In this document: piece by piece, positions 19,801 through 52,082 of the stretch
How positions within the stretch are numbered: the stretch's first letter is position 1
Layout of the letters: every line of letters begins with the position of its first letter
Origin: Macrostomum lignano
Lineage: Eukaryota
Reading direction: 5' to 3'
Assembly: GCA_002269645.1 (NCBI GenBank)
Contig: NIVC01004264.1
Location: forward strand, 1 to 52,470
DNA: 52,470 nt
Translations under genes and position numbers: made by a program
The notes under the pieces: generated by a model
Databases searched by the model: none
Told to the model about the DNA's origin: nothing
The model's input: only the letters and a program-made list of their open reading frames with translations

Positions 19801-22800
19801 GCGTCTACGCACCAGATATTGGCGCCGCCCGCCTAAGAGCCTGGCTGGCCGAGCCGGACAGGGACGAATTCCGGTTGGCGACGGCCCGGCTAGTGCGCGA
19901 GCTGCCGCTGCCACGATACTGGGAGCTGCCGATTGACTGCGCCAATGCCCAGCTGAAGGACGAGGGCGCCGAGGAACTCTTCGCTGGGAGCTGTGCCTCC
20001 TGGCCCGGTCGGATTCTCACGAGTCTGCAGGACCGCAGCGCAGAACGGGGGTGCAGAGCGGAGAAGGGTGAGCCAGACTGTCCAACTGCGTCGCTAGAGA
20101 ATAGTTGGTTACGATATACAAGGTAGCATTGATGGAAATGCGCCCGGCGCGCTGCGAGGTGCCCAAAGGGGTTTCTTTAAGGACAAATGGTTGCGAGACG
20201 ACATAACACTGTGAAATAATTGATGAGATATGCATTTATTTGGTATCCATCGCCAAATTGACGATTCTCGTATTCTTCAACTTTGCAAACGCACATAAAG
20301 GTTCATGAAAATGCCTTTAAATGCAAATTTAGCTCGTATTAGAGATTTATCTTCATTTTTGACACTATAAATTCACAAGTACTGCTTTATATCGAATGAA
20401 AAAGCACTGTAAGGATTTTTAATCTTCAGATAGTCATGAAGTAAAATTTGACAAAGACAGAACAACTTTGAGCTCGCCCATTGCATTTTCAAGCGGAATG
20501 GTATATCCTCTTGCTTCCAGGGCCTTTCAATATAAGTTTCAAAAGTTAGGCTTCCAGGGCCTTTCACGTTTACTTTTGTACTTCCCCTAAAAACTACTTG
20601 CCTTAATAGTAACTATAATTGGTACATGCGAAATTAATTTAGGATAAATTATTTTGTGCATAGCCTCTGACTTTCAGACAATTGAGCTCAGATAATTAAG
20701 CCCAGAAGACGGCTTCTCTAACGATTTTAATTAACAAGCGAAGAGAATTGAGCGCAATGTTTCGCTGATCGGCCTCCATTATAAGTTGCTTTGTGCAGTA
20801 ACTCGGTTTAAGCTGCTCTGGCTTTTCACAGTCTCATAGGGCCAATTTTATGAGCTGACAATGAAAAAAATACAAGGGAAAGGAGCCCAAGTAGAAAATC
20901 CGCGTCTCGATGAAAACATCGACAAGATACAATTCGCGAAAGACTTACGCTACATTAGAACCCAAACCAACATGCTCAACAGTCATTAGCGAGTCATTTT
21001 TCTATTTTTCCTGCAAAGAATAACTACTTCTTATTTGAAGTATTTGAAGTAATTAAAGTCAATGTGTCTACAAGTTCTCCACATGACGGCTTGTGACTCG
21101 AGCGAATTTACAAAGCTCAATAACACATATATTACAGTTGCATTAGGTACCAAGAAGGATGCAGCTTGTTGTTATATTTATTAAAACTGATCAGTGAGTA
21201 CGGGCTGTGTAGATTTCACGTTTACCATTCAGGCATTGTTCGGTTCAGAGTCAAATTTCAGAGTCAGGTCAGCTGTGAGGTTTGAGTGCTAGTCACATAT
21301 TCTTCGATAAAACGACTTCGATGTACGATGTTGCTTATTTACCAGGTAAATGAAGGTGGAATTTCTTCCTGAGCTTCGGGAACTGCTCATCCGACATGCT
21401 GGAAACGTCCATCTCGGTCGGATCATCCTTCGAATCACTTTGGCCCCTGTCGTCCTCCTGGGAAGGCTCGGCGACGACCAGGGCTGCGAACAGCAGAACT
21501 CCGAGAATCAGTTGCCACTTCATGGTTGCTTGAGTCGAGTAGAGTCTGAGCTTGTTGTGTTGAGCAGTCGGCTGCTGCTAATATATACGCATCGGATCGG
21601 CACATGTTTCCGATCCGTCGAGCAACGTTGTTTGATTTGAAGTCTTTTGCGCGAGCAGCGTTGCTTTAAGCGCATATCATGTAGCGTTTGCTTGCTTTTT
21701 GACACCCGAGCAATCAAACAAGTACCGCTCGAGCATTTTCACAGCGCAAATGTCTCTTAGGAACCTCACTGTACTAAACTGCATTTGAATATCAAGTCAG
21801 TTGTATAGTAAAGCCAAATGACACTATCTATCAATTGTGGAGAATATATGCGCAAAACAGGATATTTACAGATTTTTGTCTCGGCTACTGCGTGTCAATT
21901 TCTGATTAGTGGTTCTCAACTTTTCAGACGCTATTTAGAACTCCTTAGCTCGTAGATTTGATTCCTTACTTTCTTATTCCCGGGTAGCGAATTTTGGGAG
22001 CCGATTTCGTGTGCGACCGAACAAAGCAGAAAAATCGGAAAATTCAGACCTAGCGAAAGAAATGCATGTAAGCTCGCCGTTTGCCAGCTTTTGATATACT
22101 CTGTTTTCGAGTCGCTACGTCGCTACTTCGCTATCATCACTTACGCTGAAACCCAGCAGAGTTCCATTGAAAAACCGATGGTTCAATGCAGTCAGACGAG
22201 ACTACCTATAGTGTTTGAATTTTCTTAAATGTGCGGTTGCAAACCATGCTAAGCACACTGGACTAACACCATCTTGTCATCAGCTTTTGTACTGCAGAGC
22301 GTAGCACCACAGGCGTTACTGGCAGGAACATGAGAACCTGCAGGCAATCCAATGGCGCTTCTCTCCTGCCCTGTCATCAGCTCCGAGACATTATCTTGCG
22401 CCTCTAGGGAAGAGATATCCTTGATGTCACTATGAAATCTGTTCATGAAATTTGCTCACCCGAGTCGATTAAGGAATCAAATATAAGGAGCTCTAAATAG
22501 CACATGGCAAGCTTAGAACCCCAACTGGAAACTACAGGAATGGATTTCAACATTGAATTTAGCAGCAGCGCAAACAACTAATTGTAGAAAACAATCGCGA
22601 AGCCATATACAATATTTTTCCATATTCGATGGATAGTGTCATTTGGCTTTACTAATGCATCTGATAAAGAGCAAAATGCAATGCAGTGCAGTCTGCTGCG
22701 GTACGTAGGATAAATTTGCACTGAGAAAACGCTAGAGCGGTACTTGTTAGATTGCTCAGGTGTCAACAAGCAAATAAACGCTTCATGCTTTTCGGTTAAA

Positions 22801-25800
22801 GCAACGCCTGTCTCTGCTCACGCAAAAGCCGTCAGCTCAAACAACGTTTCTCAACGGACCGGAAACACGTGCCGATCCGATGCGTATAAATTTGAAGCTG
22901 CCGACAGCTCAACACAACAGCAAGCTCAGACTCGACTCAATCTACACACAGCTCGAAGAATCGACTCGACTCAAGCAATCATGAAGTGGCAACTGGTTCT
23001 CGGACTTCTGCTGTGCGCCGCCCTGGCCGTCGCCCAGCCCACCCAGGAGGAGGCCAAGGCCGAGAGTGAGTCTAAGGAGGATCCGTCCGACTCGGACGAT
23101 TCCAAGCTGTCGGAGGAGCAGTTCTCCAAGCTGGAAAAGAAGGGCTTCCACGTTCATTTTCATGGTTAGATGAGCCACATCGTACATCGCACAAGTGGTT
23201 TCATGGATCGGAAGATTAAGACAACTCACAGCTGACCTGACTCGGAACTCTACTCGCAACCGCCCGATTCTTAAATATGAACGTAAAATCTACACGGCAC
23301 TTATTCGCTGATCAGTTATAACAAATATAACAACCAGGACCATCTAATTAGGCTCCCAATAAAACTATAATTTTTGTGTTGTTGAGCGTTGTAAATTTCT
23401 TTAATTCAAAAGTCGTAATGTGGAGAACTTGTAGAGACTTGTAGCGTCTTGCAGTAAGTGAATTGTCGCACGAAATGTAGCAAAATGTGTTGATTCGATA
23501 TGATACTTATTCAGCGCTTATGGCTTATTCATTCATTTTCGCAAATATTTATCGTTCGCAACAAGCTTACTACTTTATGGACTATTGTGTAGTGCTTAAA
23601 TCCAAACTTTTCCGGTCATTTATTATATTGTTGGGGTGATTCGTAACTCGTCACCAAGATAAGACTAAACATATTATGCAGCTTTAGAGTTTGACATAAT
23701 TGTGGCTGAGTCACGCTAACTCACAGAATGTTCTCTTGTTTTTTGACCTAGTTGCGCCGCTTAATGAAACGTTCGATTCATGGAGCCATCATGAAGCAAA
23801 TGCCCATTTCAGGAGAAATCTCTAAGTGAAGGGCGTGACAATTTGACAAGGGACAATAGACAGAATACAACTGATTTTGGTTTCAATAAGATTTTATAAC
23901 ACGAATCGACAGCGAAGGCTCAAAGTGTGCGCAGATGTATCTCATCATTATCATTTCGCAATTCAAAAAAGCATTGTACACCTTTTACCTGACACCACAT
24001 GACCCCGCTCATTCTTAATTCATTGTATCATATCCTTGTACATTTAAATCGTTTTTTGGCCTCGCTATCCATGTAGAATACTACGAGCTAGTAGGAATAC
24101 CAAGCCATTTTCCGCCCGTCGAACTACCAAGAAGGGGGGATTCCCCAATGACAATTTTTTGTTGCGCCAGAACGGAGCAACGCAGGCATACGGAATTCAA
24201 GAACACGGGCAAAATTTTTGTTGCGCACCGTCTCAAACAAGAAAAAATTCGCCAGCCCTCCGGACCGTTGAGATATTCGACGATTCTGCCAGAAGATCCA
24301 GAAGATCGGATTTTTCCCTTGATGATGAAGTCCTAGTGTATTCAGTACACCCCTGTGCGCCAATCAGCCCTGCGCCTCAGTGCAGCCTCCAAATTTCATC
24401 AGTACGTCGACCATATGTGTCTGCAGCTCTGACTTCGTTGATCACTTGCCTTCATCCAGGCTCAGCTAATCTGTTGAAGGTACCGACGGCGTCAGGTTGA
24501 TGACGCATGTCCAGCAGTTGAGGCTTGCCCATTATTGAAGCTTGATCGGCGAAACAGGAGAATTTTGCAACAGCTCGTCCATAGTCACATGGGGCCACCT
24601 GTTGAAGGTCCAGAAGCTCCCCTCTCTTGGTAGTTTTACTGTTGAGCACTGTGAAATCAACAATAAAGTTGAGTTTATTTGAAATTGTGAAATGAATAAA
24701 TGAATAACCAAAAACTTCCTAATGAGTATCTTATAATTCAACACCTTTTTGTTGAATTTCCTGCGACAAATTATTAACTACAAGACGATTTACACTCGTT
24801 TCTTCAAGTGCTCCACATGACAACTTGCGACTTGACAAAAATGAAAAAGCTTGTCAACACAAATATTTTGGATTTTTAGGTGCTTATTTAGATCGTGCTG
24901 GTTGTTATATTTGTTAAAACTGATCAGCGAATAAGGGCTGTGTAGATTTCACGCTTAATTTTTAGGAGTTGGGCGGTTCCGATCAGAGTCCAAAGTACGG
25001 TCAGCTGTGAGTTGTCTTAATCTTCGATGAAGCGACTTCGACGTACGATGCTGCTTATTTACCAGGTAAATGGAGATGGAATTTCTTCCTCAGCTTCGGG
25101 AACTGCTCCTCCGACATCTTGGAATCGTCCGAGTCGGACGGATCCTCCTTCGACTCACTTTCGGCCTTGGCCTCTGAGGGCCCAGCGACGGCCAGGGCTG
25201 CAAACAGCAGAAGTCCGAGAACCAGTTGCCACTTCATGATTGCTTGAGTCGTGTTGAGTCTGAGCTTGTTTTCTTGAGCAGTCAGCAGTCGGCGAATTTA
25301 TGCTCATCGGATCGGCACGTGTTTCCTGTCTGATCCGATGAGCGACGTTGTTTGATTTGCAATCTTTCGCTTGAGCAGAGAAGCGTTACTTTAACCAAAT
25401 ATCATTGCAGCGTCTATTTGCTTTATGACACCTGAGCAATCAAACAAGTAAGGCTCCAGCGTTTCTAAGTGTAAATTTATCCTACACACTGCACTGCGCG
25501 GCACTCTATACGGATTTTAATGATTAGCATAAGAAAACCAAATGACACTATATCTATCGATTGTGGAGATTAAAGTTGCGAAATCGGGATATCTACAGAT
25601 ATGTATTTCGGCTACTGCGTGTCGATTTCTGCAGTTTCTGATGGCGGTTCTCAACTTGTCAGGTGCTACTTAGAACTACTTTGATTGTTTAAAGTTGTGA
25701 TACGGGTAAGCGGATTTAGTGAGCCGACAACCGGACGCATGGCCGGCCAGATATGCATGGAAGCGCACAGTTTGCCAGCTTTTATTCTTTCTTCATCTCG

Positions 25801-28800
25801 ATCCTTCGACATCAAACTGTCTGAATATATTCTTTAATCACTGCAAAGCCCCCTGAGCTCTCATTAAAGTAACCACTAGATGAGGTTCAGATTGTTGATT
25901 GGGGCTGCGAGATGGACTCAATCTGGATTGTCTGATATAGTTAATGTAGCTTGGTTTACCTGGCAGATCTTTATTTAAAAGGTTTCCAATTCACATCTTT
26001 ATCTCACGTTGGCTACTTACTCATTAGAGGGGACTACTTTCCCTCACAACTTCTTACCCCTTAAAGGTTTACCTGGCAACTTGCCATGACTTAGTGCTGC
26101 ATTTTCATGAAATATTTACAATACAACCAGGTATTCATTTCTTCACTAAATACGAGCGTATGCGAAAGTCATTCAAAGTAGCAAAACTGCCACTTTAGAA
26201 TCCCGGTAGAGAGTGTAAAAGAAGATGAGAATAATTCGCAAGACGAGGTAAAGGCTAGTAGTTTTCGTGGCGGGGTAGTTTTCTACAATACGATTTTTGC
26301 TAAATCTCACTTTCTTCAATCCTCTCAAGACTGAAATGGTGATTTTGTTATTAAAAACTTTTATCGCCTTTTTAAATTTGATAAACTCTTCTATCGGGTA
26401 GATTGATAGACTGATAGATTCTTAGTTTCTCTTTTTCAATGTCTCTACCGGGATTCCCACATGATATTCGCTCAAAGGAACGATGAGGCTGCGTCCTGGT
26501 CTCTTGAACAGCTTGAACACGACCGGATTGGACGCATTTGACGATTTAGTTCTGGCAGACTGACGCAAATGTTCAGCGGTCCCGCTAATTGTTGCCAATC
26601 TTGGTCGTCAATGTATTCATTTATTTTTCGCCGATCTTATTGTGAGAAAGTGACGATGCTCATCAAATGTGTTCATGAAATTTTCAACGTGTGGTGTCAA
26701 ATTAAAAGCTAATTTGATACAAAAAAGGTAAAATTATGTCGGTATCATTTTCAATTCATGCGCTTCACCGATCTTGAATGGTTTGAAATTCGTCCTCTGA
26801 GATGTACTTCTTCTCGATGGCCTTTAAGATAAACTATATGATCAATATATGGAACTGTTGCTGATGCCTAGCTGACTTGGAATTGACAATTGAGTTATAG
26901 TTAGCCTACTCGCTACGCTCGCATTTTTCCTATGTTACTTACTGGCTCGATCGTCCCAATTCGAAAAATAAGGAGTTTTGGCCATAGACAATTTTTAGAT
27001 TTTATTATTTCTTTCTTTGTCTAGAGTGTTGGTGTGCTAATAAAATCGGCTTCACTTTAGACCCCTCTATTGGCAGTCTATGTATACTCGATATTCTCTG
27101 GTGAAACCACAGATAGTAATAAATAGTATGTTAATTGTTATAGTATCTGTGAGTCGAACTAATAAAATACTTCTTAGTTTTTAACTTTTGTCGCTCGCTT
27201 TGTAAGGTAGCTGACGGAGTTTATTACATTTCTCAGTAAGTTAAGTGGGCCTTAATGGTAGATTGTGTAGTAGGTCCTAGAATTGATAAATATTCAAAAA
27301 CTACTCGTGCTTCACACGCATTATTCTGGGATGCATTATTCTATGGCCTACCCTTTGTCGCCCAATTTTTACGTACCGCATGTAATATCGCTTATGACTC
27401 TTGACGATTTGGCCATAGGAAACTTTTACAGCTTAGATAGAAAGACCAGGGAGAAAATAGAGAAGGTAAGACCGACCATACACTATAATTTCTCTTGACT
27501 TAAAGCTCCTTTCACCGAGACTCTTGAAGCAGTATCAATATATAGCCGCTAAGTAGTATTGGTTTTGTCAGCCTAACTGAGAATAAAGCCATCCAAAGTG
27601 AGAATCCTGCCTACGCTGACTGCGAAGGGCCTGGCTGCGTGCAGCCTTAGTCTATGGGCCATAGACTATAAAGGATAAGCAAAGTGATAAAAAGCCATCC
27701 AATGTGAGAATCGATCGCTTTTTCTCTTTCCCCCAGCTCTCTTCACTCCTCCAAGCGCAACTCCTCCATCACTGCTTCTCCATCACCCACAGTCTCGTTG
27801 CTTTCTTGCCTATTTATCCAACACTTAGAAGGCTGCCGCGTGGGACCTGCATTGCAGACGACTCTTTGGGCAGTGCATTGAGGGACGGCTATTTTAACTC
27901 TTTAGTTTACTGTACTGTATCATCCAGTGTGTTCCTGTTTCCGTTATTCCGTTCAAGCTATTGGCTAGTCATATGGCTCAGAAGGTATAAAAATAAAAGA
28001 ATACAACGCATAGACCAATCGATTCTCACATTGGATGGCTTTTTATCACTTTGCTTGTCCTTTATAGTCTATGGCCCATAGACTAAGGCTGCACGCAGCC
28101 AGGCCCTTCGCAGTCAGCGTAGGCAGGATTCTCACTTTGGATGGCTTTTTTCTCAGTTAGGCTGACAAAACCAATAGTAGCAGAGTTGAGTTTTAACCCC
28201 TTCAAATTATGATTTGCCAAGCAAATCGATCCCCATCAAGTACGTCAGGCAAATCCACTAAGCATTTATTTTCTGGTTTTTCCGTATTTTCTGCTTTGTT
28301 CAATAAAAAAATCGACTTCCAAATCCGCTTACTCAGATCGAGTAAACAATCGAATCTAAGGAGCGCAAAAAACCCATCTGACAAGTCGAGAACAACCGCC
28401 AGAACCTGCAGAAATAGACACGCAGTAGCCGAAATAACAATCTGTAGATATCCCAAATTGTACGCATTTTTTCTCCACAGACGATAGATAGTGTCATATT
28501 GGTTTGCTATGCAAAATAGTCAAGTAGAGTGCATTGAAGTGCAGTGCCGTAGGATAAATTTGCACTGAAAAACGCTAGAGCGGTACTTTTTGATTGCTCG
28601 GGTGTCAACAAGCAAATAAACGCTACATGATATTCGGGTAAAGCAACGCCTGTCTCTGCTCACGCAAAAGCCGTCAGCTCAAACAACGTCTCTCAACGGA
28701 CCGGAAACACGTGCCGATCCGATGCGTATAAATTCGCAGCTGCCGACTGCTCAACACAACAAGCTCAGGCTCGACTCAATCTACACACAGCTCGAAGAAT

Positions 28801-31800
28801 CGACTCGACTCAAGCAATCATGAAGTGGCAACTGGTTCTCGGACTTCTGCTGTGCGCCGCCCTGGCCGTCGCCCAGCCCACCCAGGAGGAGGCCAAGGCC
28901 GAGAGTGAGTCGAAGGAGGATCCGTCCGACCCAGACGATTCCAAGCTGTCGGAGGAGCATTTCTCGATGCTGAAGAAGAAAGGCTTCCACGTTCATTTTC
29001 ATGGTTAGATGAGCCACATCGTACATCGCACAAGTGGTTTCATGGATCGGAAGATTAAGACAACTCACAGCTGACCTGACTCGGAACTCTGACTTTGAAC
29101 TTCTTAAATAGAAAACCTGAAATCTTCACTGCCCTTATTCGCTGATCAGTTATAACAAATATAACAACCAGTATCATCTAATTAGGCACCCAGTAAAGCT
29201 ATAATTTTTGTGTTGTTGAGCGTTGTAAATTTCTTTAATTCGAAAGTCGTAATGTTGAGAACTTGTAGCTCGTAGATCATCACAATCGAATTGAGCACAC
29301 AAAGCAACTATACTATTAATGTTGTTAAGCTTTGTAATTTTTCAAGTTGCGAATCGTAATGTGGAGAACTTGTTAATGCTTGCAAATAATGCTTTGTCGC
29401 ATGAAATTCAGCGAAACTTGTTGATGCGATAGATAATTTGCGACTTGATGCGATAAGGTCAGCAATTATCAGTTATTTCTTCGTTTTCGCCGAATCTTAC
29501 CATTTAAAAAAGAGTTAGTGCTTAATGAACTGTTTCAAAAAATATTAGCTACATGAAGGAAGATTTCAAAAAATCATTTATGATTTCTTGTGGCGATTCG
29601 TTATTCGTCACCGACAATATGGCTAACAAAGACACGCAGTTAACCGTAAATACGCTATCTTTGAACCTTTGGCGCACTACGAGCATTTCCTGGAATTTTC
29701 CCGTGTTTTTTCGAATACAACTGCTCTTAGTGGCTTAACTGCGTGTGCGGTAGGTGAGCCGACATGAGTAGATAGCTTTTAAATTGACAACATGGAAGGC
29801 CACGTCCCCTAGACTTAGAATTCCACAAAGGGTCAAATGGAAGGCATAAGAACAAAAATTTGGTACCCTGCCATTGGAACCCACTTGGGATTCGGTGATC
29901 CTAGGTCAAGGAGTGTGGTCGGGCTCTGAGAGCAGAATCTAACAAACGGAGGATTTGAGGACGAAGCCAAGTCTTCAGAATCTGAGCTCTCCTCAGCTAC
30001 TCTGGTGGGGTTCGGGGGTCGAGGGGAGAAATCTCTTCCATTTTGTCATCGGAGCCTGAGGACTCTGGCGGAAATCTCCAAGTCAATCTCTCAAACGAGC
30101 CCCGACGGAATGAGAAAAGGATTGAATCCTGTATAGTCTCCTTGACGGGAGAATCGTTCATAAATTGAATTTAGTATATTATGACTAACCTCCACTGCCA
30201 AAGGAGCAACTTTCTGTCTACAAATAAATCTATTGCCCTATTGCCCCTCTGCGTCAGTAAATTTTATTAAGACTGCAAAGTTGCACAGGCCAGTCCTTAT
30301 CCTAATCCATGAACCCTGGATGCGCAACGGTAAGTTGCTCAACATTCCTTATGGCTACTCTGACTTCAGTGTTTGTGGCCCGGAGAACAGTTGCCCTACA
30401 GTGACCATCCTCGCTGCCAGCCATCTCCAGGCTTGGCTGAGGGCGATCTTTCAGATGGAGGTCTTTGTGTCATCCAATCTGACAATCTCTCTTGGCGTGA
30501 CAGGGTGATAGGGTAATATCCTAGGTAACAGGGACCCTAACTGCGCCGAGCGCAATACTACGAATTTCAGAAGGCTGAGCTGTGCTTGGGGGGACGACCT
30601 TAACACACATCATAAGCACTAGAACAGCAAAAACACCAATGCTAGAGGGTAGGAGATTCTTGTCCTCATCTATTTTTGAAATATTATGCTCTGCAACCAC
30701 AGAAGCACTCTTACCTTCGAAAATGCCACATGCACCAATGTTCTCGATGCCACACTCGTTACCCCAGACTCTGATCTGATCAACGAAAACCCACTTTATC
30801 TGACGTCTGCTCCATCGCCTTTAACATCGCGGAAACTCAGCTCCAGGCCTTGAGTACTTGGAGGGGTAACGTCCGCAACACTGATTGGACAGCCTATAAG
30901 GTTACCTTCGATCTGCACCTGCAGGAACTCACGGACGAGCGTCCGATTGAGGCCTGGGAGGAATTCGATCAAATGGCTGAGAGGCAAACAGACTGCATTA
31001 CTGCAGCTTTTGAAGCGGCCTGTCTTGTCCGTGCCTACAAAGGCAAGACTTCTTTCAGTCCGTGGTGTAGCCCGGAGAAGCTCAGACTGAAGGCCAAAAG
31101 CCCTCACCGCAGCGCCACAAAAACTTGTAACCCAAAAACTTCAATTCTGAGGTGCGGAAGGCCAAGGTATGTGGCGGATATACTGCAATGAGTTGGATCA
31201 CGAAACCTACGTCTAGGCTTGTCAAGCCCCTGACAATTGGAAAAAATGTCCAAACTAGCCATCATAAGAAATTATGATGGCTCTCTAACTAAAAGCCCTT
31301 AAGAAATGATTTAACAAATGCTCAGCACCATCTTTGCAAAGTTACCCACTGCCAGAACAGAGCCCTATGTAGGGAGCCACTTTGGTGGCAGGCATCGTTA
31401 CAAAAGACTCTATCACCTGTGCGGTTGGAACCTTCAAGCCCTTCAACTCTCTTGGAGCTGATGGTAACTACCCAGTTCTTCTTCACGAAGCATCTGTCAT
31501 ATCTTCATTTCGCTTTACATGCAATAGTAGAACGGGCATGGCTGGGCGACACTTATGCCTTCAGTCTTTCCCTCAACCTTGAAGGTGCTTTTGATAATGT
31601 AATCATCAAGGTGTGTCAGGTGGCTCTTAAAAATCACAAAGCTCATGCTACTCTCCACGGTGCATTATGAACATGATTTCCATCCCCACGGTCACTGCTT
31701 AACTTTGCGTGCAAATCCCTTCCACCAGATTCTGAAAGGGAGGATCCAAAGGCTGAGCTCTCACGCCGACGCTCTGAAGCCTGGTCATGAGTGCCTTTCG

Positions 31801-34800
31801 AGTGATCCCTGGCCACCAGGCCCTGTCTTCATTTTCGGTTGGTTACGGTAACGACGCCACTGCCATTGGAGGCAGGGCCGTCACCCTGCACGCCCAGACA
31901 TTTACTTGATCCAAAGCTTTATCCGCAGAGCTCAATCCATGAAAGAGGTTTAAAACTTTGAGGTTGAGCCCAACACTCTCGGCATTATGTTAGTTCACCA
32001 GCAAAATACAGTGGAGCATGAGACCTCTGCAGTCATACGACGGATATATTGCCCTCACCCAGAAAACTACCTTTGACAAGTTAAGAGCTACCATCGGAAA
32101 CTGCAAAAAGCGACACAAAGTAGCCGAGACAAAAATCTGTAGACATTCCGAATTTATTCTGCGCAGGCGATAGATAGTGTCATTCGGCTTTACTATGCAA
32201 CAGATTAAGAGTCAAATGCAGTGCAGTACACTGCAGAGTACTGCGATACGTAAGATGAACTGAGAAAACACTAGAGTGATACTTTTTTTGCTCAGTTGTT
32301 ATAAAACAAATATACACTACATAAAATTCTTTTAAAGCAACGCCTGTCCCTGCTCACGCAAAAGCCTTCATCTCAAACAACGTCTCTCAACGGACCGGAA
32401 ACACGTGCCGATCCGATGCGTATAAATTCGTAGCTGCCGACTGCTCAACACAACAAGCTCAGACTCGACTCAATCTACACACAGCTCGAAGAATCGACTC
32501 GGCTCAAGCAATCATGAAGTGGCAACTGGTTCTCGGACTTCTGCTGTGCGCCGCCCTGGCCGTCGCCCAGCCCACCCAGGAGGAGGCCAAGGCCGAGAGT
32601 GAGTCGAAGGAGGATCCGTCCGACTCGGACGATTCCAAGCTGTCGGAGGAGCAGTTCTCCAAGCTGGAAAAGAAGGGCTTCCATGTTCATTTTCATGGTT
32701 AGATGAGCCACATCGTACATCGCACAAGTGGTTTCATGGATCGGAAGATTAAGACAACTCACAGCTGACCTGACTCGGAACTCTACTCGCAACCGCCCGA
32801 TTCTTAAATATGAACGTAAAATCTACACAGCACTTATTCGCTGATCAGTTATAACAAATATAACAACCAGGACCATCTAATTGGGCACACAAAACAACTA
32901 AAAAATTAATTTCGTTGAGCTTTGTAATTTCTTCAAGTGTCAAGTCCTCGTGGAACACTTGTGGATACATCTACTTGCACATAATGATTTTTAGCTTTCA
33001 TTACACATCGTACATCGAAGTAGCTTTATGGAAGCTGGCCGGACTCTGAAATCTGACTACTCAATTATCTAGTGATACGAGTAAAAGTAAACTCTGCACA
33101 CTTCAAGCTTTTTATGCTTCAAGCACAGACACACACACACACACTGCTTGCTAAATTTAAGAGGTGACTTTAATGAAAAGCTTCTTTTATACCCTTTTCT
33201 TCATCGTTGTTGGTAAATGTGCACGTTATTGATGACTCGCGGTTAAAAATGGACTGTCTCTATTAGATTTTTTGATCAGATTTGGAATGAATCGCTACAG
33301 CGAAAATATTGTTGCGGGGAATATGCTAAAATTTTGGTGGGCATATTGACCCCATATATAATTACGTTGATCAATAAATAATATTCATTTGTCACATTTC
33401 TGAATATATTTAAGATTCACTCGTGGATACGTCCACACAGCCATCTAATTGACCATCAAATCACGCGAACCATGTGAAAAGGAATAAAAATATGTACCGG
33501 CTGTGTGATGGCACCAAATTGGCGATATTTGATCGCTGTATGAACGAGCGTTAAAGGCACTTACTGTGTACACTGAGAAAAGTCAGGCCATAATATATGC
33601 ACCCACGAAAATGTGTGCTAGTTGGATTAGCGAACGATTGAATTTGATCGTCCACTTGCAGGTTGAGTAAAATGGCGTCAACAGCAACACATTTGAATCT
33701 CGCGCGAAGGCACATGTACTTTGGTTTGCCTGGGCTCAGACATTCAAGGCACAGAGTGTACTGAGATGCTTGACAATAAGAATGTTAAAGCCGCTGAATG
33801 CCCGGCTGAAGTTTATGCCTGTATATTCTGTGGTGTGCCTGCGTACGCATCGGTGTACTTAAAGGTAATCAGAATGGCCTGCCTTAACTACTTGCCTCCT
33901 CACTGGAAAATAGAGATCTTGACATGCAGTTGCACCAGCGACAGATAAGGAAGAAACTGTAATTTATTGTTTTTTATCTAACAAGTTTTTCTAGTCATTT
34001 TTAGTTTACCTTCCACTACAAAAGTACCTTGCCTAAAATTTACCCTCAATAATCCATCAATCCAACAGAGCGAGTGCAGTTCAACGAATTTCCGTTGGCA
34101 GTCCATGGAGACATTGGCGTGCTGACTCACCTGCAGCCGATTAACGAGCCTGAGCTGCTCCAACATTGGGATAGCAATGGCGGCAGAGGAGTGTGAGCAG
34201 CTCTATGCTGATGCTTTTAAATGTTTTACCTCTTCCGTTTAGAAGGTAACTCCCTCGTCTGTCTCCTGCGTCGAATGGAAGCTCACTCTTCCAGTTACTC
34301 TGACTCTCCAGCTTCACCTCACGACTCTCACTAACGGCTCGTTCACACCATTGTATTGTATGTATTGTTCAAATCGACAAAATTATGGGAAGATAACGTA
34401 AAAATTGGCTTAATTTTATGGCAGTGTAAACTAGCATTAGATCTTCCCATAAAAATATATTTCAGATTCACCTTCTCAACCTGGATCTACTTGGAGAGGT
34501 CATGCGATTCGAGCTGGTGCAACATCCTGCTGGGCATCGACGCCGAGAACCGACATCGGTCGCCCGGCCTGTTGATAACCAAAGACAACAGGCTGCACTA
34601 CCAGGGACATCAATCCAACCGGGAAGACTCGAAGGGATCCGCCTTCCTCAGTGGCTATCGGCTTCCCCTGAGGACTTGGTTGCGGATTGTGTTGATCTGG
34701 CAGCCGCACGAGGTTCGTAAACATTTTTACCAGCATTATTGGGCCTAAAGTAGGATATTGGCAGGGGTCAGGATCCCCAGCGGCAAAAATTTCGAATCCG

Positions 34801-40651: not shown

Positions 40652-40739
40652 TGCGCCCGGACCAGTACGAACAGCTTGATTACCTTGCCTTCAACATGTG
40701 AAAATTTCCGTGATTAAACCTCTAATATACATAGGTAAA

Positions 40740-41427
<688 letters not shown>

Positions 41428-41933: not shown

Positions 41934-41967
41934 CCGGAAACACGTGCCGATCCGATGCGTATAAATT
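41934..41967 (+). promoter_or_regulatory. Family promoter module (E-box + TATA)
   Basis: Identical core block. Confidence 0.7.
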
Positions 41968-42052
41968 CGTAGCTGCCGACTGCTCAACACAACAAGCTCA
42001 GGCTCGATTCAATCTACACACAGCTCGAAGAATCAACGCGACTCAAGCAATC

Positions 42053-42235
42053 ATGAAGTGGCAACTGGTTCTCGGACTTCTGGTGCTCGCAGCCCTGGTC
42101 GTTGTCGAGCCCTCGGAGGCCAAGGCCGAAAGTGAGTCGAAGGAGGATCCGTCCGACTCGGACGATTCCAAGATGTCGGAGGAGCAGTTCCCGAAGCTGA
42201 GGAAAAAATTCCATCTCCATTTACCTGGTAAATAA
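42053..42235 (+). CDS. Secreted micropeptide precursor, type A (FHLHLP-GK)
   Basis: Intact ORF downstream of SEL1L3. Confidence 0.86.
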   Translation: MKWQLVLGLLVLAALVVVEPSEAKAESESKEDPSDSDDSKMSEEQFPKLRKKFHLHLPGK

Positions 42236-43470
42236 GCCACATCGCACATCGAAGTCGCTTCATTGATGATTAAGACAACTCACAGCTGACCGAACTTTGA
42301 ACACTGACTTGGAACCCTACTCAGTCTTTATTCGCTGATCAGTTATAAAAAATATAACTGCAAGTACCATCTAATCAGGCATCAACTACAACTATAACAT
42401 ATTGTTGATCTTTGTGAATTTCTTTAAGTTGCGAGTCGTCTCGTGTGGGGAAGTTGTACGAGGTACATGTACTTGGAGATAATGATTTGTGACGTCACAT
42501 AAAATTCAACAAAAATGTGTCGATGAGATAAGATACTCATGCACTATAGATTATTAAATAATTTTACTTAGTTTTACCGTTTAATGTAAGCACACAGCTC
42601 AATGGGCGAGTAATGGGTGTGTAATTATTAAATTGCATTCGATCCCTATCTTCACCAGTCATTTATAACTTTTTTAACTATTCCCAGCATATGACTGAAG
42701 AGCTTTAATGTTCGAGAATGCTTGCCACTGAACTTTTAGAGTTGAATGAATTTTCGGTTGTTCTTTGGTCTCGGTAAACATTATTTATTAAATGTGCAGT
42801 CGATTCATGAAACGTTAGACCATCATGTAGCAGGTGTGCATTTCATGAGAAATCACGAAAACAAGAAAAGAGAAAATGTGAGCAATCATGCGAACTGGCT
42901 TTGATCCGAAGGTAAACAAGGAGTGTCTCCCGCTGTAAGCGACACCGATCAATGTCGGTTGAATCATCAATCATCAATAATCAGCGAAGTTAGGAGCTGC
43001 CATTTATTAATAATTTTAGAAATTTAGAAACTAGAAATTTTACATCGCCATTTATGTTGTAAAATTAGTTTGAAATATAAAAATTTGGCGAAAATGAAGC
43101 GCTAAACCAAAAATGCCGTATGAACAACTTATCACATTAGCGCTATTTTGATGAATTTCAATTAAAAAATTCTTATCTGGAAGTAAATAATCTGAAATTC
43201 TTTCAAATAACGACTCGCAAATTGAACAAATTGAACAAATCGCATTAAGCTCAACAACAAATATTATAGCTGGACGTTTAAGCAGATGGTGCTGGTTGTT
43301 ATATTTGTTATACTAATACTAATCAGCGAAAAAGGTTGTGAAGATTTCACGCTTAAGTTTTCACGTTGTCACACTCAGAATTTTTGCGGTTGCGAATCAG
43401 AGTTCAAAATCAGGCAGCTGTGAGTTGTCTTAATTTCGATGAAGCGACTTCGATGTGCGATGTGGCTCAT

Positions 43471-43653
43471 CTAACCATGAAAATGAACGTGGAAGCCCTT
43501 CTTTTCCAGCTTGGAGAACTGCTCCTCCGACAGCTTGGAATCGTCCGAGTCGGACGGATCCTCCTTCGACTCACTTTCGGCCTTGGCCTCCGAGGGCTGG
43601 GCGACGGCCAGGGCTGCGAATAGCAGAAGTCCGAGAACCAGTTGCCACTTCAT
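43471..43653 (-). CDS. Secreted micropeptide precursor, type B (GFHVHFH-G)
   Basis: Intact ORF, tail-to-tail with the 42053 copy. Confidence 0.87.
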   Translation of the reverse strand: MKWQLVLGLLLFAALAVAQPSEAKAESESKEDPSDSDDSKLSEEQFSKLEKKGFHVHFHG

Positions 43654-43740
43654 GATTGCTTGAGTCGAGTCGATTCTTGGAGCCGTGTGTCAGATTGAGA
43701 CGAGTCCGAGCTTGTTGTGTTGAGCAGTCGGCAACTACGA

Positions 43741-43773
43741 ATTTATACGCATCAGATCGGCACGTGTTTCCGG
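43741..43773 (-). promoter_or_regulatory. Family promoter module (E-box + TATA)
   Basis: Reverse complement reads CCGGAAACACGTGCCGATCTGATGCGTATAAAT. Confidence 0.7.
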
Positions 43774-46035: not shown

Positions 46036-46553
46036 CAACAACAACAACAACAAGGTACTGCTCCCGCCGGCCACGCAGTAGCCAGAAAGGGGGGAGCAGT
46101 CAGAAAGCGCGTCTCTGGGCCATTGCCCTCAGGAAGTCGCATCCCCCTGCTTGGTCCGGGGCGCCAGCGTCACTCAGAAGTCGGTCAGGGTATCGCACCG
46201 TTCGCCCTTGGCCTCGCCTCCGCGGTCCCTGCAGCTTGAGCAGCAGCACGTCGTGTAGCGGCTCAGGACAGCGGGCCTCCGACCGGATGACGTGGCCAGC
46301 CAGTCGAAGTCGCCGCCCGCGCAGCAGGTCAGAAGGCCGCGTCAGGCGGGCCCTAGTGTAGAGCGCGGCGTTGGTCTCGCTGCCTGGGCCGCTGCGCACT
46401 CCGAAAGCCGCACGCAGCATTGCCGCATGCGCAGCGTCCAGCTGCCTCTCCAAGGCGTCCGTCAGGGTCCAAGTCTCGGCGTTGTACAACAGGACAGTCT
46501 CGATGACTGCCTGAAACAGCCGAGCCTTGAGCCCGTCGTCCAGGGCCTCAGAT
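46036..46553 (-). mobile_element. 5'-truncated copy of a related RTE subfamily
   Basis: YNAETWTLT...LERQLDAAH...RLRLAGHVIR...LLL.LQGP.RRGQ matches the RTE C-terminus; (TTG)n tail; probable TSD TCAAATC(AA) at ~46027-46035 and 46554-46562. Confidence 0.88.
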
Positions 46554-46589
46554 TCAAATCAAATAGATGAATACGAGCTAGATAGAATT

Positions 46590-47010
46590 GATAGATTCTT
46601 CTTTCTTCTTTTTCACTGTCTCTACCGGGATTTTGTACATGATATTCGCTCAAAGGAATGACGAGGCTGTCAATCACAGCTTGCTGCGTCCTGGTCTCCT
46701 GAACAGCTTGAACACGCCCAGGTTGGACACATTTGACGATTTTATTTCTTCAGACTGACACGAAGTTCCCGCTAATTTTTGCCATCCTTGTTGTCAATCT
46801 AATCGTTCATTGTTTGCCGATCCTGCTGGGAGACAGAGACTTCTAATACTATGGTCATCACGGCAATCGTGAACTTTTCTATTTATTGTGGTGTCAAATG
46901 AAAGGCAGATTTGGTGCAAGGAAAGTGTAGCTCAATTTATGTTAATATCATTCTCCATTCATGGAAGGCATTCCACTGAGATGTACTTTTCCTCGATGGC
47001 CTTTAAGATG
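46590..47010. repeat. Diverged duplicate of 26400-26830
   Basis: See the partner feature. Confidence 0.85.
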
Positions 47011-47559
47011 TGAGAATGATCAATGCATTGACACCGTTTTTATTCATTACGAGCGTAGTTTCCTTTTTTAGTTTTTGGGTTTCATTTGCCGGTAATGGGG
47101 CAGCGCTTCAGTAATTTCTGGAACAAAAATCGTATGCAGCATCCACTGACCCGATCAGGACAGCGGCTAGAACTGGTATGAAACCATCGACATATCCATC
47201 GACATATGGCAAAGCACGCACTCAAATATGCCATCAAACTTGAGTAGAGGGTAGAGCGCGCGAATCACCCAAATAAGTCACAAATGAACGGCGAAGTGAG
47301 GAACTGCCGGTTAATGCTCGTGACTCGTAATTTTACAATTGTTGATTATGTTGTGGGCTTATGCGATATATTAAAATTCAAAAACATTATTGAGCACCGC
47401 AAAAGTGCTGAGTATATTATCGCATCAATAAACACGCCGGAAGGAGCCAAACGAGACAAATCAGTTGCGAAAAGCAGGCAGCGGCCGAGAAAGCGGATCC
47501 CAACCCCAATGATGGGGAAGGGAAGGAGTAAAAGCGGGAAGGCAGTCAGGTGGACGCAG

Positions 47560-48595
47560 CCTGCAGCTGCGAAGCCATGAGAGAAGCAGAGCGCTGGCGG
47601 CGCGACAGGGCAGAGCTGGAAGAAAAGTAGCGGAGAACAGCGTCCGATCTCCAGCCCCAAGAGCCCGAACGTCCGAATCTGGCAAGCCGATTTGATGACA
47701 GAAGCTGGCACCCCCACGCCGGATGCTGTGGCCGGAGAAACCAGCAGCTGGAAGGCCGCACGCAGCCAGACACGCACGAAGACAGCTGATGAGCTGGCTG
47801 GCTGAGAGCTCGCCTCCGAGGCCGTAGCCAAAGAGTGGCGCCTTGGGTCGCTGGCTGGTGACAGGTGCAGGTGAGACCGCAGGGCGCGCACAGGGCAGAG
47901 CGGTGACTCTTGAACAGGTGGCAGAAGAACGACATGCGGCGTCGACCCGAACTGGTTGGTCTTGGACTTAGGGAGGGCCAACTTCCAGCAGCCAGATGAA
48001 GCCGACAGGCAGCCCGCGAGACAGAGCGGCTGCCGCGGGTCGATAGGAAGTCGCCAAGGCGCAACATGCCCCACCAGCCCACCAGAAGAGCCGCCCAGAA
48101 GGCGGCCCTGAGATCTGCGCTTGAGATGGAGCGCGGGAGCTGCTGATGGATGCTCTTGAGGTGCTCGATGGTCAGCGGCTTCGCCTGTTTGCATCGCAGG
48201 CCCAGATGACGTTTGGCGCCGCGGAGGGCCAGCTGCACGGTGAAGTCTTTCGCTGGGTCGGGGGCGCCGGTGGCTTGGTGCAGAAAAGAGACGGCATGGA
48301 TGTAGGATCGGAGGCTAGAGAAGGACCGGAGCCGGGTGCTCACCAGGTGCGCGATGTAGCGGCAGAGCAGGTCCCCGTCAGCTGGAGATGAAGGGCGGCC
48401 TGCGCTAACACAGAAGGCTTCCCAGGAGCGCAGCTGGCTGAGGTGGGATCGCCAGGAGTTCTCCGCCAGGCCGAGGCGGCGCAGGTGTCCGGCGGACACA
48501 GCGCGGGGGCGGGCGGCGTCTCCGGAGGGCGAGGGCGACCTGCAAAAGGAGGCGAGATTGGGAAGCGGCAGAGAGCGCGTGCGACGCGAACTCAA
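47560..48595 (-). pseudogene. Tyrosine recombinase, frameshifted
   Basis: GLAENSWRSH..QLRSWEAFC, GMLRLGD, LPKSKTNQFG, CPVRAL, GWRSDAVLRY spread over two frames. Confidence 0.85.
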
Positions 48596-48639
48596 GCGGG
48601 CAGATCACGAGCGTACGGCAGTAGCGGCAGCAAAAGTTA

Positions 48640-50200
48640 ATGAGCTCAGACTGCGAGACAAACATGCGGGAGGCGGCATCAGCAAAAATCTGCATGCGAC
48701 CAGGAAGGCGAAAGGCCTCCAAACTGATGCTGTTCCTGACGCACAGCAGAGCCACAGTCTGGTACACCTGCAGGAACCGCGGGTCACGACAGCTCAGCGA
48801 TTGATCATGCCAGCCGCAGCGGTGCTGTCGGTGTAGATGACAATCTTGCAGTTCTATAGCTGAGAGCGACGGTGCAGGATAATCAGCAAAGGTGCCAGAG
48901 CCTCCTTGAAGTTGATATGAACATCCTTGAACACCCCACCGCAGTCGAGCTCCCAGTCGATGACACTCCAGAAACTCTCGGCACCCCAGATGACTGCGGC
49001 TGCGCCCGACCGGCTGCTGTCAGTCTCCATGGCAAACTCCTCATCAAAGCGCGGCCACAAAGACACCAGGGGGGGGTGGAGCCAAGCCAGGGCTCTGAGC
49101 CACCAGGACAGGTTGGCGCGGGTCTCATCGGTCACCCAAAGCTTGCAGTCAACAGCAGTTGTCAGCCAGTCGAAGAGCGGACGCAGGAAGACTCTGACAT
49201 GAGGGACAATCTGACAGAACCAGCTAAGCTTGGCAATCAGCTTCTGAGCAGAGCGCATGTGCACCCGAGTCTCCGAGCAGGTTTGAGTCAGCAGCTTTGT
49301 CGTCTCGAGAGCTTTCTCTTCGGGCAGCGACTTGGTGCCGGTAGCGGTGTTGATGCGCACGCCAAGGAAGTCGATGCATTGCGTAGGTCTGACAACCTTG
49401 TCCCAGTTGATGGTAAAGCCGAGGCGCTGCAAGATGTCCAGCAGGCAATCGAAAGCAGCGAAAGCCTCGGACTCAGATTTCCCAGCGACTGCCCAGTCAT
49501 CCAGGTAGTTCACCGTGGCAGAAAAGCCAAGCCGATGCATGTGCCGGGTAACGGCGGCTGAAAGACGGTGGAAAACTTCGCAAGCAGCTTTGGCGCCGAA
49601 GGGAAGCCTGGTGTCGCAGAGCAGACTGTCCTGGCTGTCTGAGTCAAACCGCCAGGCGAAGCCGACGAGCCGGTAGTCAGCAGGCCTGATTGGCACGGAC
49701 CTGTAGGCGCTTTTGAAATCAATTTTGGCCATGTAGTGTCCCGGACGGAGATGACGAACCAGCTGCTGGACAGTGCAGTACTTGATGTGCTTCTGTTGGT
49801 CGTAGAAGTCGTTGACAGACTGGCCGGTCGGATAGGACAGGTCATGGATCAGGCGGACCCGCCCGTCGGACTTGGGAAGGGCACCGATGGGATTGACTTT
49901 GATCGGGCCGCTCCACCGGATGTACCTCCCAAGGCGCAGCTCCTCCTCGACCTGGGCTTCCACAGCAGAGCGGTGTAGCAGGGCGGAGGCGTGGTTCTTG
50001 GACGAAGTCAAAGGTGGCTGGCCAGCATTGGTGAGAGCGAAACCGTTGACGACGCCTTGCATCAGAAGGTCGCGGTCTGGGTCGTCGCTGAGCAGAGCAC
50101 TCCAGGCGTCAGGTTGCAGGTCAGACGAGATGGGCAGCGAAAAAGTAAAAGCAGAAAAATCGGAATTAAAAGCAGAGCAGTCAGCTGGATAAAATGGCAT
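48640..50200 (-). pseudogene. Reverse transcriptase-RNase H; RNase H tail broken by a stop and a frameshift
   Basis: VRLIHDLS, KIDFKSAYRSVPI, LPFGAK, NYLDD, IDFLGV, METDSS, HINFKEALA, then L*NCKIVIYTDS and LPGRMQIFADAASR in a shifted frame. Confidence 0.9.
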
Positions 50201-51360
50201 CAGTTTTTTGCACTCGCACCGGTCACGTGACCCGGCAGCTGTCCGGTGAGTAGTGACTGCGGCGACTGCGTGTGAGCGTGAGCCGGGTGCGCTGCCAGGC
50301 AGCCTTGGATTTTGCAGACGTGGCGGAACCTGCAGTTCTGGCGGGTGCACCCGGACTCGGAGTTGAAGCGCAGACAGATCGGCCTGGTTGCTGCCGGGAT
50401 TTGCTGCTGGCTGGGCTGCTTAGCGAACGTGAACCGCAGGTTTCTGGGGGCGTTGAGGTGCTTGTGGTACAACTGAGGGGGCTCCTCACCCCACGCCATG
50501 CCCGACTCCGCCACCAGCCTCCAGTAGTCCTCGTCAAACTCCCAGATTACGGACTCCGGGTAGTCAGCAGCCAGCAGCTCGCCAATCTTGCGATTGTAGT
50601 CAAGGTAGCCAAGGACGTCAGTCAGGAGACCATCAGTGCTTCCAGCAGCCGCCGGAAGTTTTTCCTTGATCAGCTTTTACAAGATGATCGAGTTGGCCGC
50701 GATCCACTGACCAGCAGAGATACTAGACAGCTTCGGCTACTGCTTTCTGAATGAGAGCGAGCCATTCTCCATAGTGGCGACCAACTGCTCCTGACTGGCT
50801 GAGCCGGGTCCTCTGGCTAGCTTGATATGGTCTCTGACGAGATGCAACTTGCGATTCGGAGCCTGGCAATTAGCGGCCTGAAGCTGAGCCGCCTCCCTCA
50901 TCCCAGATTCAAAAACCTCGGGCAACTGCAGACTGGTATGTGCGTTTGGCTCACCTGATGATGATGTTGGCTGGGGCTGAGCCGTCAAGCGCTGCTGAGT
51001 GTGAAGCTGTTGCTGAAGATCACGACGACGGCCTTCCAGGACTTGCAGTTCGAGCAGCTCCACCTCCTGCCGCAGCGCAGCCAGCCGGTCGCTCCCCGCC
51101 CCCGGAGGCGCCTCGCCCGCGCAGCTGATGCCGACTTCGGCGTCCGGAGCAGAAGTCATCTCGGAGTTGTTGAAGTCTTCGTCAGCTTGCTCTAAACCGA
51201 GTGCAGTAGACAAGCGCTTGGCAAGCTGTTGTTTGCGACCCGTAGTAGGCAGGCCTCTGTTTCGCAGCTCAGCCTTGAGTTGGCGCACGTTTAGAGTCGC
51301 TTTGGGCTGGCACTCATGGCGGTGGCTGAGCAAAAAATTGAGAAATTGCGGCGGAGCCAA
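50200..51360 (-). pseudogene. Gag-like ORF1 with an N-terminal SAP-like motif and a C-terminal Cys/His finger; two in-frame stops
   Basis: LNVRQLKAELRNRGLPTTGRKQQLAKRL; ICLRFNSESGCTRQNCRFRHVCKIQGCLAAH. The frame stays continuous through TAG (~50737) and TAA (~50677). Confidence 0.78.
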
Positions 51361-51814
51361 GCCGGGCCGGGTGCAGAGGCTTTAAGCTGGCCGGCGCGGC
51401 CAACACCCCCACACCTCAACCCCTACCAAAGTACAGCCATATGTACAGCGGCACCCTCCGGCCTGTCTAACACCCCTTACTCAGAGAGTAACGATTGCAA
51501 TAAATCTTCGATGAATTTCCTTTTAAAAACCCTTATCTACTCGTACAAGTAGCTGCACCGAGAGGTTCTCCACATGACGACCTGCGACTTGAAGAAATTT
51601 ACAAAGCTCAAAAACGCAAACGTTATAGCAGCATTGGGTGCCTTATTAGATGGTGTTGGTTGTTATATTTGGTAAAACTGATCAGCGAATAAAGACTGAG
51701 TAGATTTCACGTCTATCATTTAGAATTGGGCGATTCTAAGTCAGAGTTCAAAGTCCGGTCAGCTGAGTTGTCTTAATCTTCGATGAAGCGACTTCGATGT
51801 GCGATGTGGCTCAT

Positions 51815-51997
51815 CTAACCATGAAAATGAACGTGGAAGCCCTTCTTCCTCAGCTTCGGGAACTGCTCCTCCGACAGCTTGGAATCGTCCGAGTCGGATG
51901 GATCCTCCTTCGACTCACTTTCGGCCTTGGCCTCCGAGGGCTGGGCGACGGCCAGGGCTGCGAATAGCAGAAGTCCGAGAACCAGTTGCCACTTCAT
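51815..51997 (-). CDS. Secreted micropeptide precursor, chimeric (type A spacer end FPKLRKK + type B peptide GFHVHFH-G)
   Basis: Intact ORF. Confidence 0.86.
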   Translation of the reverse strand: MKWQLVLGLLLFAALAVAQPSEAKAESESKEDPSDSDDSKLSEEQFPKLRKKGFHVHFHG

Positions 51998-52082
51998 GAT
52001 TGCTTACGTCGAGTCGATTCTTCGAGCTGTGTGTAGATTGAGTCGAGTCTGAGCTTGTTGCTTTGAGCAGTCGGCAACTACG

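Follow-up and report, generated by a model that had tools for sequence, protein, structure and literature searches.

A Macrostomum-restricted family of putatively secreted His-rich peptide precursors with a layout resembling that of amphibian skin peptides

The precursors of the preprodermaseptin type in the skin of hylid and ranid frogs are encoded by multigene families, in which a conserved signal peptide and an acidic spacer are followed by a dibasic site and by one hypervariable peptide, in many cases amidated by way of a terminal Gly or Gly-Lys, and precursors of this type were reportedly treated by Vanhoye, Nicolas and Amiche in 2003. The arminins of Hydra and other taxon-restricted families of antimicrobial peptides (AMPs) combine an anionic pro-part with a cationic C-terminal peptide and comprise many paralogues. 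Other AMPs, such as histatin 5, the clavanins and the piscidins with their ATCUN N-terminus, are rich in His or dependent on pH or metals and have a length of 22-24 residues or more, the clavanins and piscidins being helical. In free-living flatworms almost no antimicrobial or secreted effector peptides have been characterised, and a review from 2025 describes AMP research on free-living marine flatworms as being at an early stage (PMC12466427). Here we analysed contig NIVC01004264.1 of the flatworm Macrostomum lignano (assembly GCA_002269645.1, Mlig_3_7), the whole of which (52,470 bp) is called the window in the following and which carries eight intact genes for short, His-rich peptide precursors. 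On balance, and with modest confidence, we assume from the sequence that these genes belong to a functional, transcribed and Macrostomum-restricted family, whose products would be secreted, cleaved at KK and amidated and would serve as host-defence or mucosal effector peptides.

An earlier note on this DNA had reported eight short open reading frames (ORFs), and all eight were recovered with the same positions, strands and translations, each encoding a prepropeptide of 60 or 62 amino acids (aa). Two types of tail can be distinguished. Type A, (E/R/K)KK-GFHVHFHG-stop, is present in 5/8 copies, with EKK in c2 (22981-23169, +, 62 aa), c5 (32514-32702, +, 62 aa) and c7 (43471-43653, -, 60 aa), KKK in c4 (28820-29008, +, 62 aa) and RKK in c8 (51815-51997, -, 60 aa). 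Type B, RKK-FHLHLPGK-stop, is found in the other 3/8, namely c1 (21335-21523, -, 62 aa), which has the most divergent spacer, c3 (25055-25237, -, 60 aa) and c6 (42053-42235, +, 60 aa). The dibasic site, which had been given as KK, RKK or KKK, is present in this form, but the preceding residue is also E, and the description as intronless holds for the uninterrupted coding sequence (CDS), whereas the untranslated regions (UTRs) might still contain introns. Protein identity among the eight copies ranges from 59 to 100%, and an identical copy of the c4 protein is encoded on contig NIVC01000570.1. Because of this identity, the alignable gene unit and the single promoter block that accompanies each ORF, the recurrence is far beyond chance.

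The proposed layout of signal peptide, acidic spacer, dibasic site and short tail with C-terminal Gly or Gly-Lys is real and under coding constraint, which was analysed in about 133 kb from four contigs, comprising the window and regions L001, L003, L004 and L005. All full-length copies with a His-type tail are intact (24/24) and only 3 fragments are present; the sense frame is the only one that is open in all copies. Among the 20 distinct coding sequences the variable sites are distributed over the three codon positions as 13:13:32, and the pooled ratio of non-synonymous to synonymous variation (pN/pS) is 0.41 overall and 0.29 in the region of the cleavage site plus tail. In the segment from KK through the tail to the stop codon, the comparison within each tail type revealed 5 synonymous and 0 non-synonymous variants. 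Indels in the CDS are 3 and 6 nucleotides (nt) long and the sole 1-nt gap is the shift of the stop codon between the two tail types; indels in the flanks have all lengths. An example of an unconstrained copy within the window is a ninth, partial match at 14565-14676 (-), a decayed pseudogene of an Arg-type member (MKWQLAL..., after which the frame is lost), with its ATG at 14597-14595, a deleted signal region and a TATA box that is mutated to TCATTAAAT. Taken as a whole, these sequence comparisons indicate that the CDS is under purifying selection.

Homologues were searched with a full HMMER scan of 1.84 billion representative proteins and with two word-index profile searches, which first pick candidates sharing short exact words. 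Relatives were detected only in M. lignano, apart from one contig of the Sequence Read Archive (SRA), and the genes of the window represent, judged from the alignments, the His-rich branch of a Macrostomum-restricted superfamily. Its members have in common a signal peptide (MKWQLALGLLLCAALAVA), an acidic spacer (net charge -5 to -14) and KK, which is invariant in 8/8 window copies, 24/24 His-type copies and 21/21 tabulated superfamily precursors. A C-terminal Gly is found in 8/8 window copies, and G or GK forms the end of 20/20 tabulated precursors from M. lignano; superfamily members without it are P0044 and the SRA contig P0025. The processing by a convertase and subsequent amidation, as suggested before, gains weight from this conservation of KK and terminal Gly across the wider set of paralogues, which is what such a route predicts.

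In most copies the N-terminus consists, by inspection, of MK, a hydrophobic core of 16 residues and A-V-A followed by Q-P. Signal peptidase would cut after residue 18, between A-V-A and Q-P, and a prohormone-convertase-type enzyme after KK; a carboxypeptidase would then strip basic residues, and peptidylglycine alpha-amidating monooxygenase (PAM) could use the terminal Gly to yield GFHVHFH-NH2 and FHLHLP-NH2, with a predicted [M+H]+ of 879.437 and 762.441, respectively. PC2-type convertases and amidating enzymes are known from flatworms. The anionic spacer (net -5 to -8) probably neutralises or masks the tail during transit until its release.

Behind the conserved prepro region the tails are hypervariable in sequence and range from 6 to 31 aa across the superfamily, as is evident from the alignments and a table of tails. 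The tails of the paralogues are FIHIHF, further IFRVHVRF, FVRVHVRF, IFRVRVHI, IFRVRVRI and IFRVRARIHI, and WLRVRARVRI, FVRVRARIRL, FVRVRVRL and FIRARVRVRL, and longer tails are FRIRIRWGRVARNVLRLL, WLLRRIRIRWRRVLRVASRVYRIYRYLPI and WRIKSACKIFRRLLHLARKCYAKK. In the short tails, which alternate strictly, the hydrophobic moment calculated for a beta-strand is far larger than that for a helix. Arg and His replace each other at polar positions, which places the peptides of the window at the all-His end of a series. The genomic Logan contig SRR31628392_42504 (L006, 929 nt) encodes a family member with a Pro/Arg-rich tail of 31 residues (FLRVRLPRVRMPRVRLPRVRLPRLRVRFRWS) without terminal Gly, yet the GGAAAAACGTG...CATAAAT promoter is kept.

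With regard to function, the earlier note had left defence, mucus or adhesive glands and signalling side by side. Defence is now favoured, as sister genes encode Arg-rich, AMP-like tails and as the combination of a conserved prepro region, a hypervariable, cationic and putatively amidated tail and a high gene dosage is that of antimicrobial gene families. Judged from the sequence, a role in host defence or as mucosal effectors is therefore most likely. The His versions would be Arg-to-His variants of such tails, in which histidines in i,i+2 spacing can bind Zn or Cu, and their activity would depend on acidification or metal binding; we estimate that the peptide charge rises from about +0.5 at the pH of seawater to +3 to +4 at pH 5. 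An independent, published pipeline for AMP prediction has flagged the long-tailed superfamily member BOX15_Mlig001477g4 and the look-alike BOX15_Mlig026130g1-3, and 82-91% of the predictors applied by Irvine et al. rated such long-tailed relatives as AMP-like (PMC10414684, supplementary file 5).

Evidence for transcription comes from the annotation. The genes had been regarded as unannotated, which does not hold, because the NCBI contig record carries CDS models for at least c2 (partial, 22861-23169), c3 (25055-25252), c5 (partial, 32460-32702) and c8 (gene model, 51815-51997), and dozens of paralogues have entries under names of the form 'hypothetical protein BOX15_Mlig...'. As RNA-seq data were assembled into the genome-guided transcriptome that serves as the Mlig_3_7 annotation (PMC5730564), these models count as evidence of transcription; the eight genes are real, transcribed copies. 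A position inside the intron of another gene is so far unsupported, as the contig record lists no spanning gene. Names, domains or functions are not attached to the NCBI models of the family, and a Pfam scan of three family members gave no match, only chance matches below threshold (DUF4576, SPG4). Searches of full-text literature with the peptide strings and gene ids had no matches, we found no paper that names or describes the family, and no description of it was found in the literature on neuropeptides, AMPs and glands of M. lignano. Six representative gene ids were not among the rows listed in the supplements of PMC5946080, PMC5816591, PMC12896417, PMC7336406 and PMC5977470, tables that may use other ids, so that these searches are weak negatives; they yielded no site of expression. 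The family itself is new, the kind of system is already known, and the products would be unusually short.

All copies have one anatomy, as revealed by an alignment of the eight copies and a motif scan. The gene unit spans about 0.45-0.9 kb, and in a self-BLAST about 0.8-0.9 kb are alignable between copies, whereas the intergenic DNA is not. Each unit starts with a near-invariant 31-nt promoter block, GGAAACACGTGCCGATC(C/T)GATGCGTATAAAT, with the core GGAAACACGTGCC-N-TATAAAT; the window contains exactly eight such blocks, one ahead of each ORF. An ACGTG-containing element sits 13 nt upstream of the TATA box. In detail, the units, promoter blocks and 3' motifs are located at ~21171-21611, 21581-21611 and 21171-21194 (c1, -, block variant GGAAACATGTG...TATATAT), ~22861-23331, 22861-22891 and 23307-23331 (c2, +), ~24904-25326, 25296-25326 and 24904-24928 (c3, -), ~28703-29165, 28703-28733 and 29141-29165 (c4, +), ~32397-32864, 32397-32427 and 32840-32864 (c5, +, block GGAAACACGTGCCGATCCGATGCGTATAAAT with TATAAAT at 32421-32427), ~41936-42358, 41936-41966 and 42334-42358 (c6, +), ~43298-43771, 43741-43771 and 43298-43327 (c7, -) and ~51662-52114, 52084-52114 and 51662-51686 (c8, -). 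Half of the tallied models (10/20) begin 48-57 nt before the ATG, which is about 37-40 nt downstream of TATAAAT, and these 5'-partial models have N-terminal extensions of 16-19 aa; in three copies with a shorter 5'UTR, due to a deletion of about 30 nt, the extensions measure 5-10 aa. The sequence TCAGACT at the predicted start fits an initiator. A 5'UTR of about 50 nt is followed by the uninterrupted CDS of 60-62 codons, and the 3'UTR of about 150 nt ends in CTGATCAGT...AAATATAAC, with AAATATAAC as a conserved motif, about 135-160 nt past the stop codon.

Even the most divergent paralogues, in which the DNA around the promoter cannot be aligned any more, have retained GGAAA[CA]ACGTG followed by [TC]ATAAAT upstream of the gene, and the footprint is common to all subfamilies. 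The conservation of the footprint in diverged paralogues argues that the superfamily as a whole is regulated in common. In c2 and c4 a 13-14-nt inverted repeat, GCTCAACACAACAA / TTGTGTTGTTGAGC, in addition brackets the transcribed part, with arms at 22907-22919 and 23375-23387 (c2) and at 28749-28762 and 29208-29221 (c4), of which one follows closely on the TATA box and the second lies about 200 nt beyond the stop codon. Long antisense ORFs of 56-105 aa overlap every family copy, for example at 22942-23259 (-), and the antisense -3 frame is open in 21/24 copies. As products these ORFs were rejected, because neither their start nor their length is conserved and because the many codons for Glu, Asp, Ser and Lys account for the open frame. 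In the NCBI model PAA88591.1 a sense copy seems to be joined to an antisense stretch of this kind. Most probably the antisense ORFs are an artefact of the acidic-codon composition and of gene pairs in head-to-head orientation.

The number of copies is higher than the eight that gave the family its first description; the sample contains 24 intact His-type copies, and the superfamily amounts to more than 40 clusters or models. NIVC01000570.1 and NIVC01000181.1 match the window over long stretches with 96-97% identity, and the end of NIVC01000619.1 matches it with 99.6%; by their sequence these contigs are homeologous or allelic versions of the locus in a neopolyploid. The position homeologous to c5 on another contig contains a c4-type patch of eight nucleotides, and c6 hardly differs from a paralogue on NIVC01000619.1 between -100 and codon 52, yet the two have different tail cassettes. 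Short-patch gene conversion that homogenises copies and shuffles tails is thus demonstrable in the alignments. A recent expansion of the family, as had been proposed, is doubtful, because paralogues share only the gene unit and their similarity is maintained by this short-patch conversion; recent tandem duplication was ruled out, since only about 0.9 kb is common to paralogues. The locus is better described as an old array that is kept similar by conversion. Compared to type A, type B has lost the Gly codon and has three amino-acid changes and a 1-nt deletion that removes the stop codon and leads to Gly-Lys-stop, an ending which is still compatible with amidation. Several subfamilies are located on one contig of 208.6 kb (L010 at 29-49 kb, L003 at 185-205 kb).

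Several points weigh against an amidated host-defence peptide family as outlined above. The cleavage of the signal peptide was judged by eye and the VVV-E variants agree poorly with the -3/-1 rule, KK is rarer as a convertase site than KR or RR, and the mature peptides, their amidation and their activity are predicted from sequence only. Furthermore, peptides of 6-7 residues which are almost uncharged at the pH of seawater are atypical for membrane-active AMPs. At 0.895 the nucleotide identity of the CDS is no higher than that of core promoter and 5'UTR (0.894), and therefore selection on the protein is not the sole force that keeps the copies alike; gene conversion adds to the similarity and confounds pN/pS. 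In addition, some transcript models begin upstream of the TATA box, so that the start of transcription is deduced and not proven. Finally, the His-type and short Arg-type members are not among the matches listed in supplementary file 5 of PMC10414684.

The same processing logic of signal peptide, dibasic site and C-terminal Gly would apply to precursors of neuropeptides or hormones, and the family might be an expanded and diverged offshoot of an I/L-amide neuropeptide (GFVRIamide, FVRIamide) acting on receptors or peptide-gated channels. Among the accepted neuropeptides of flatworms is GFVRIamide, and FVRIamide represents a lophotrochozoan family; type A tails begin with GF like GFVRIamide, and tails of paralogues such as FVRVRVRL and IFRVRVRI, which start with FVR and end in VRL-NH2 or VRI-NH2, resemble internally extended FVRL- or FVRI-amides. 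Nevertheless, we regard this origin as rather unlikely. Each precursor contains a single peptide and is encoded by one of dozens of near-identical tandem genes, the tail is highly variable (6-31 aa) behind a conserved prepro part, which is the reverse of neuropeptides constrained by a receptor, and long Arg/Trp-rich paralogues such as WLLRRIRIRWRRVLRVASRVYRIYRYLPI are AMP-like. No similar precursor outside Macrostomum, including orthologous precursors in other flatworms or lophotrochozoans, was matched in libraries that contain flatworm proteomes, although peptides of this length are by themselves below detection and a distant origin is conceivable.

A second alternative is a structural or material function, in which the peptides, together with Zn2+ or Cu2+, would build up fibrils or gels of the beta-sheet type in mucus, rhabdites, adhesive, eggshell or seminal fluid, or would chelate metals. 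A bulk secretory product fits the high gene dosage, and the beta-strand moment of the tails far exceeds the helical one. GFH and FIH would provide an N-terminal X-X-His copper site of the ATCUN type; His is at position 3 in the predicted GFHVHFH and FIHIHF if the cut is made directly after KK, and at position 2 in FHLHLP. Moreover, FHLHLP, FIHIHF and GFHVHFH resemble two designed heptapeptides, acetyl-LHLHLRL-amide and acetyl-IHIHIQI-amide, in their alternation and predicted C-terminal amide; in a Zn-dependent manner these designed peptides assemble into cross-beta fibrils, in which His2 and His4 share one face (PMC10008563). We consider such a material improbable, because the natural N-terminus would be free and charged and FHLHLP ends in Pro, unlike the designed peptides, because assembly is predicted by analogy only, and because most of the superfamily is rich in Arg, which does not bind metals. 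A weak negative is that the gene ids are not among the rows listed in the supplements of an in situ screen of seminal fluid (PMC5977470), the supplements of adhesion papers not having been searched. In its most far-reaching form, to which we likewise give little credence, the His-rich genes would encode natural counterparts of the designed catalytic amyloids, amidated peptides of 6-7 residues which would have arisen from Arg-rich antimicrobial tails by Arg-to-His changes and, once secreted, would bind Zn2+ or Cu2+ and assemble into a beta-sheet material for defence, adhesion or catalysis.

The precursor might also remain uncleaved, so that the functional product would be an acidic secreted protein of about 42 aa with a tail similar to a His tag, or the spacer alone. 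Within the His subfamily the spacer is as strongly conserved as the tail, and processing of the tail is a prediction from sequence. However, while the spacers of the subfamilies have diverged by more than 50%, KK and the terminal Gly alone have stayed invariant, the 1-nt deletion that killed the stop codon of type A gave in type B a G-K-stop that is still competent for amidation, and tails are swapped as discrete cassettes; we therefore hold an uncleaved product to be very improbable. Non-functional ORFs on a repeated or mobile cassette, as might be suspected from a discrete unit of about 0.9 kb in both orientations and with irregular spacing, from a CDS identity not above that of the UTR and from the inverted repeat around the transcribed part of c2 and c4, are hardly credible in view of the excess of variation at third codon positions, frame-preserving indels, 24/24 intact copies despite up to 18% divergence, the RNA-seq-derived gene models and a promoter footprint kept across deeply diverged subfamilies. 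A transposon was rejected as a candidate, as the unit ends have no terminal inverted repeats, long terminal repeats (LTRs) or coding capacity of a transposable element and identity decays gradually at the edges; the peptide ORF is the sole constrained ORF of the unit.

The remainder of the window contains several other features. Exons of a Sel1/TPR-repeat gene lie between c5 and c6 at 36927-39957 (+), with a Pfam match to Sel1 in the ORF 38073-38543. A non-LTR retrotransposon at 16106-19376 contains an intact ORF of 1040 aa (16166-19288, -) with endonuclease and reverse transcriptase (RT); it is wholly absent from the otherwise 96-97% identical NIVC01000570.1, and the insertion is therefore recent or polymorphic. 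Between c7 and c8 a retroelement at 47546-51360 (-) carries an RT ORF (48854-50350) and an ORF with a SAP domain (50737-51360), and its ORF 47546-48595 (349 aa) has no Pfam match and is possibly a tyrosine recombinase of a DIRS-like element. Satellite arrays are present at 4-13351, 39997-40371 and 40913-41427, with repeats of 14 nt (x105), 38 nt (x27), 53 nt (x10), 32 nt (x54) and 22 nt (x40), and further arrays of 17 nt (x32), 28 nt (x13) and (GATA)n (x129); these mini- and microsatellites account for the strong composition skews of the first 14 kb. The ORFs 1551-2093 and 9143-9577 (+) share a motif (in one version IRFTVRFRQENSEKRWKDYLNYRK), which suggests exons of a gene or paralogous domains; the ORF 9143-9577 has no Pfam match.

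With this family a large and lineage-specific set of genes with a common compact promoter becomes accessible in a model species for which RNAi and transgenesis are available, and it offers a clear case of tail-cassette swapping by gene conversion. Provided that they are in fact produced, the peptides would count among the shortest amidated effectors that genes are known to encode, and the Arg-to-His series would be a natural experiment on the tuning of charge, pH response and metal binding. Should the reading as catalytic amyloids be true, the locus would encode a multigene, metal-switchable peptide material in an animal.

A comparison with known systems places the family as follows. With histatin 5, the clavanins and the piscidins it has in common a predicted His charge that is switched by pH, and the X-X-His of GFH and FIH could bind Cu(II), but the sequence is unrelated and the precursor is organised in another way. 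The arminins of Hydra are likewise lineage-specific and secreted, without homology to the M. lignano genes and with active parts of about 30 residues. The HLHL and IHIH cores of the designed heptapeptides are identical to those in FHLHLP and FIHIHF, and length (6-7 residues), alternation of hydrophobic residues and His and the here predicted C-terminal amide agree; however, the designed peptides are synthetic and N-acetylated, whereas the natural ones would have no acetyl group and their Zn binding and assembly are putative. The Arg-type paralogues, F-(VR)n-L/I-NH2 as predicted, are similar to FVRIamide and GFVRIamide (npp-1) in their aliphatic amidated C-terminus and F-V-R core, whereas the tails of the window, GFHVHFH and FHLHLP, are without the FVRI/L motif.

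Two AMP candidates come from M. lignano itself. BOX15_Mlig001477g4 (P0043; Irvine et al., 2023, PMC10414684) belongs to the same superfamily and has a long tail. BOX15_Mlig026130 follows the same layout, with an MKWQLA signal, a spacer of acidic character and a cationic, G-terminated tail, but aligns with the family only over the first 24-25 residues, which comprise the signal and the start of the spacer (hhalign 94.6%). Both are rows of a supplementary table there ('Ungrouped', 'Same genome') and are not described as a family or tested (PMC10414684). In overall design the family resembles the preprodermaseptin type, with the same layout and a peptide diversity that is concentrated behind the cleavage site. 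The differences are KK instead of KR, an uninterrupted CDS, predicted peptides of 6-10 residues with an alternating beta-type pattern instead of helices of 10-50 residues, and a flatworm as host. As the HMM scan and the two profile searches returned only Macrostomum and one SRA contig and no homology to the frog prepro region, the resemblance is an analogy and not a membership. By this analogy the locus shows an apparent convergence of a flatworm on the frog-type layout of a conserved prepro region and a hypervariable tail.

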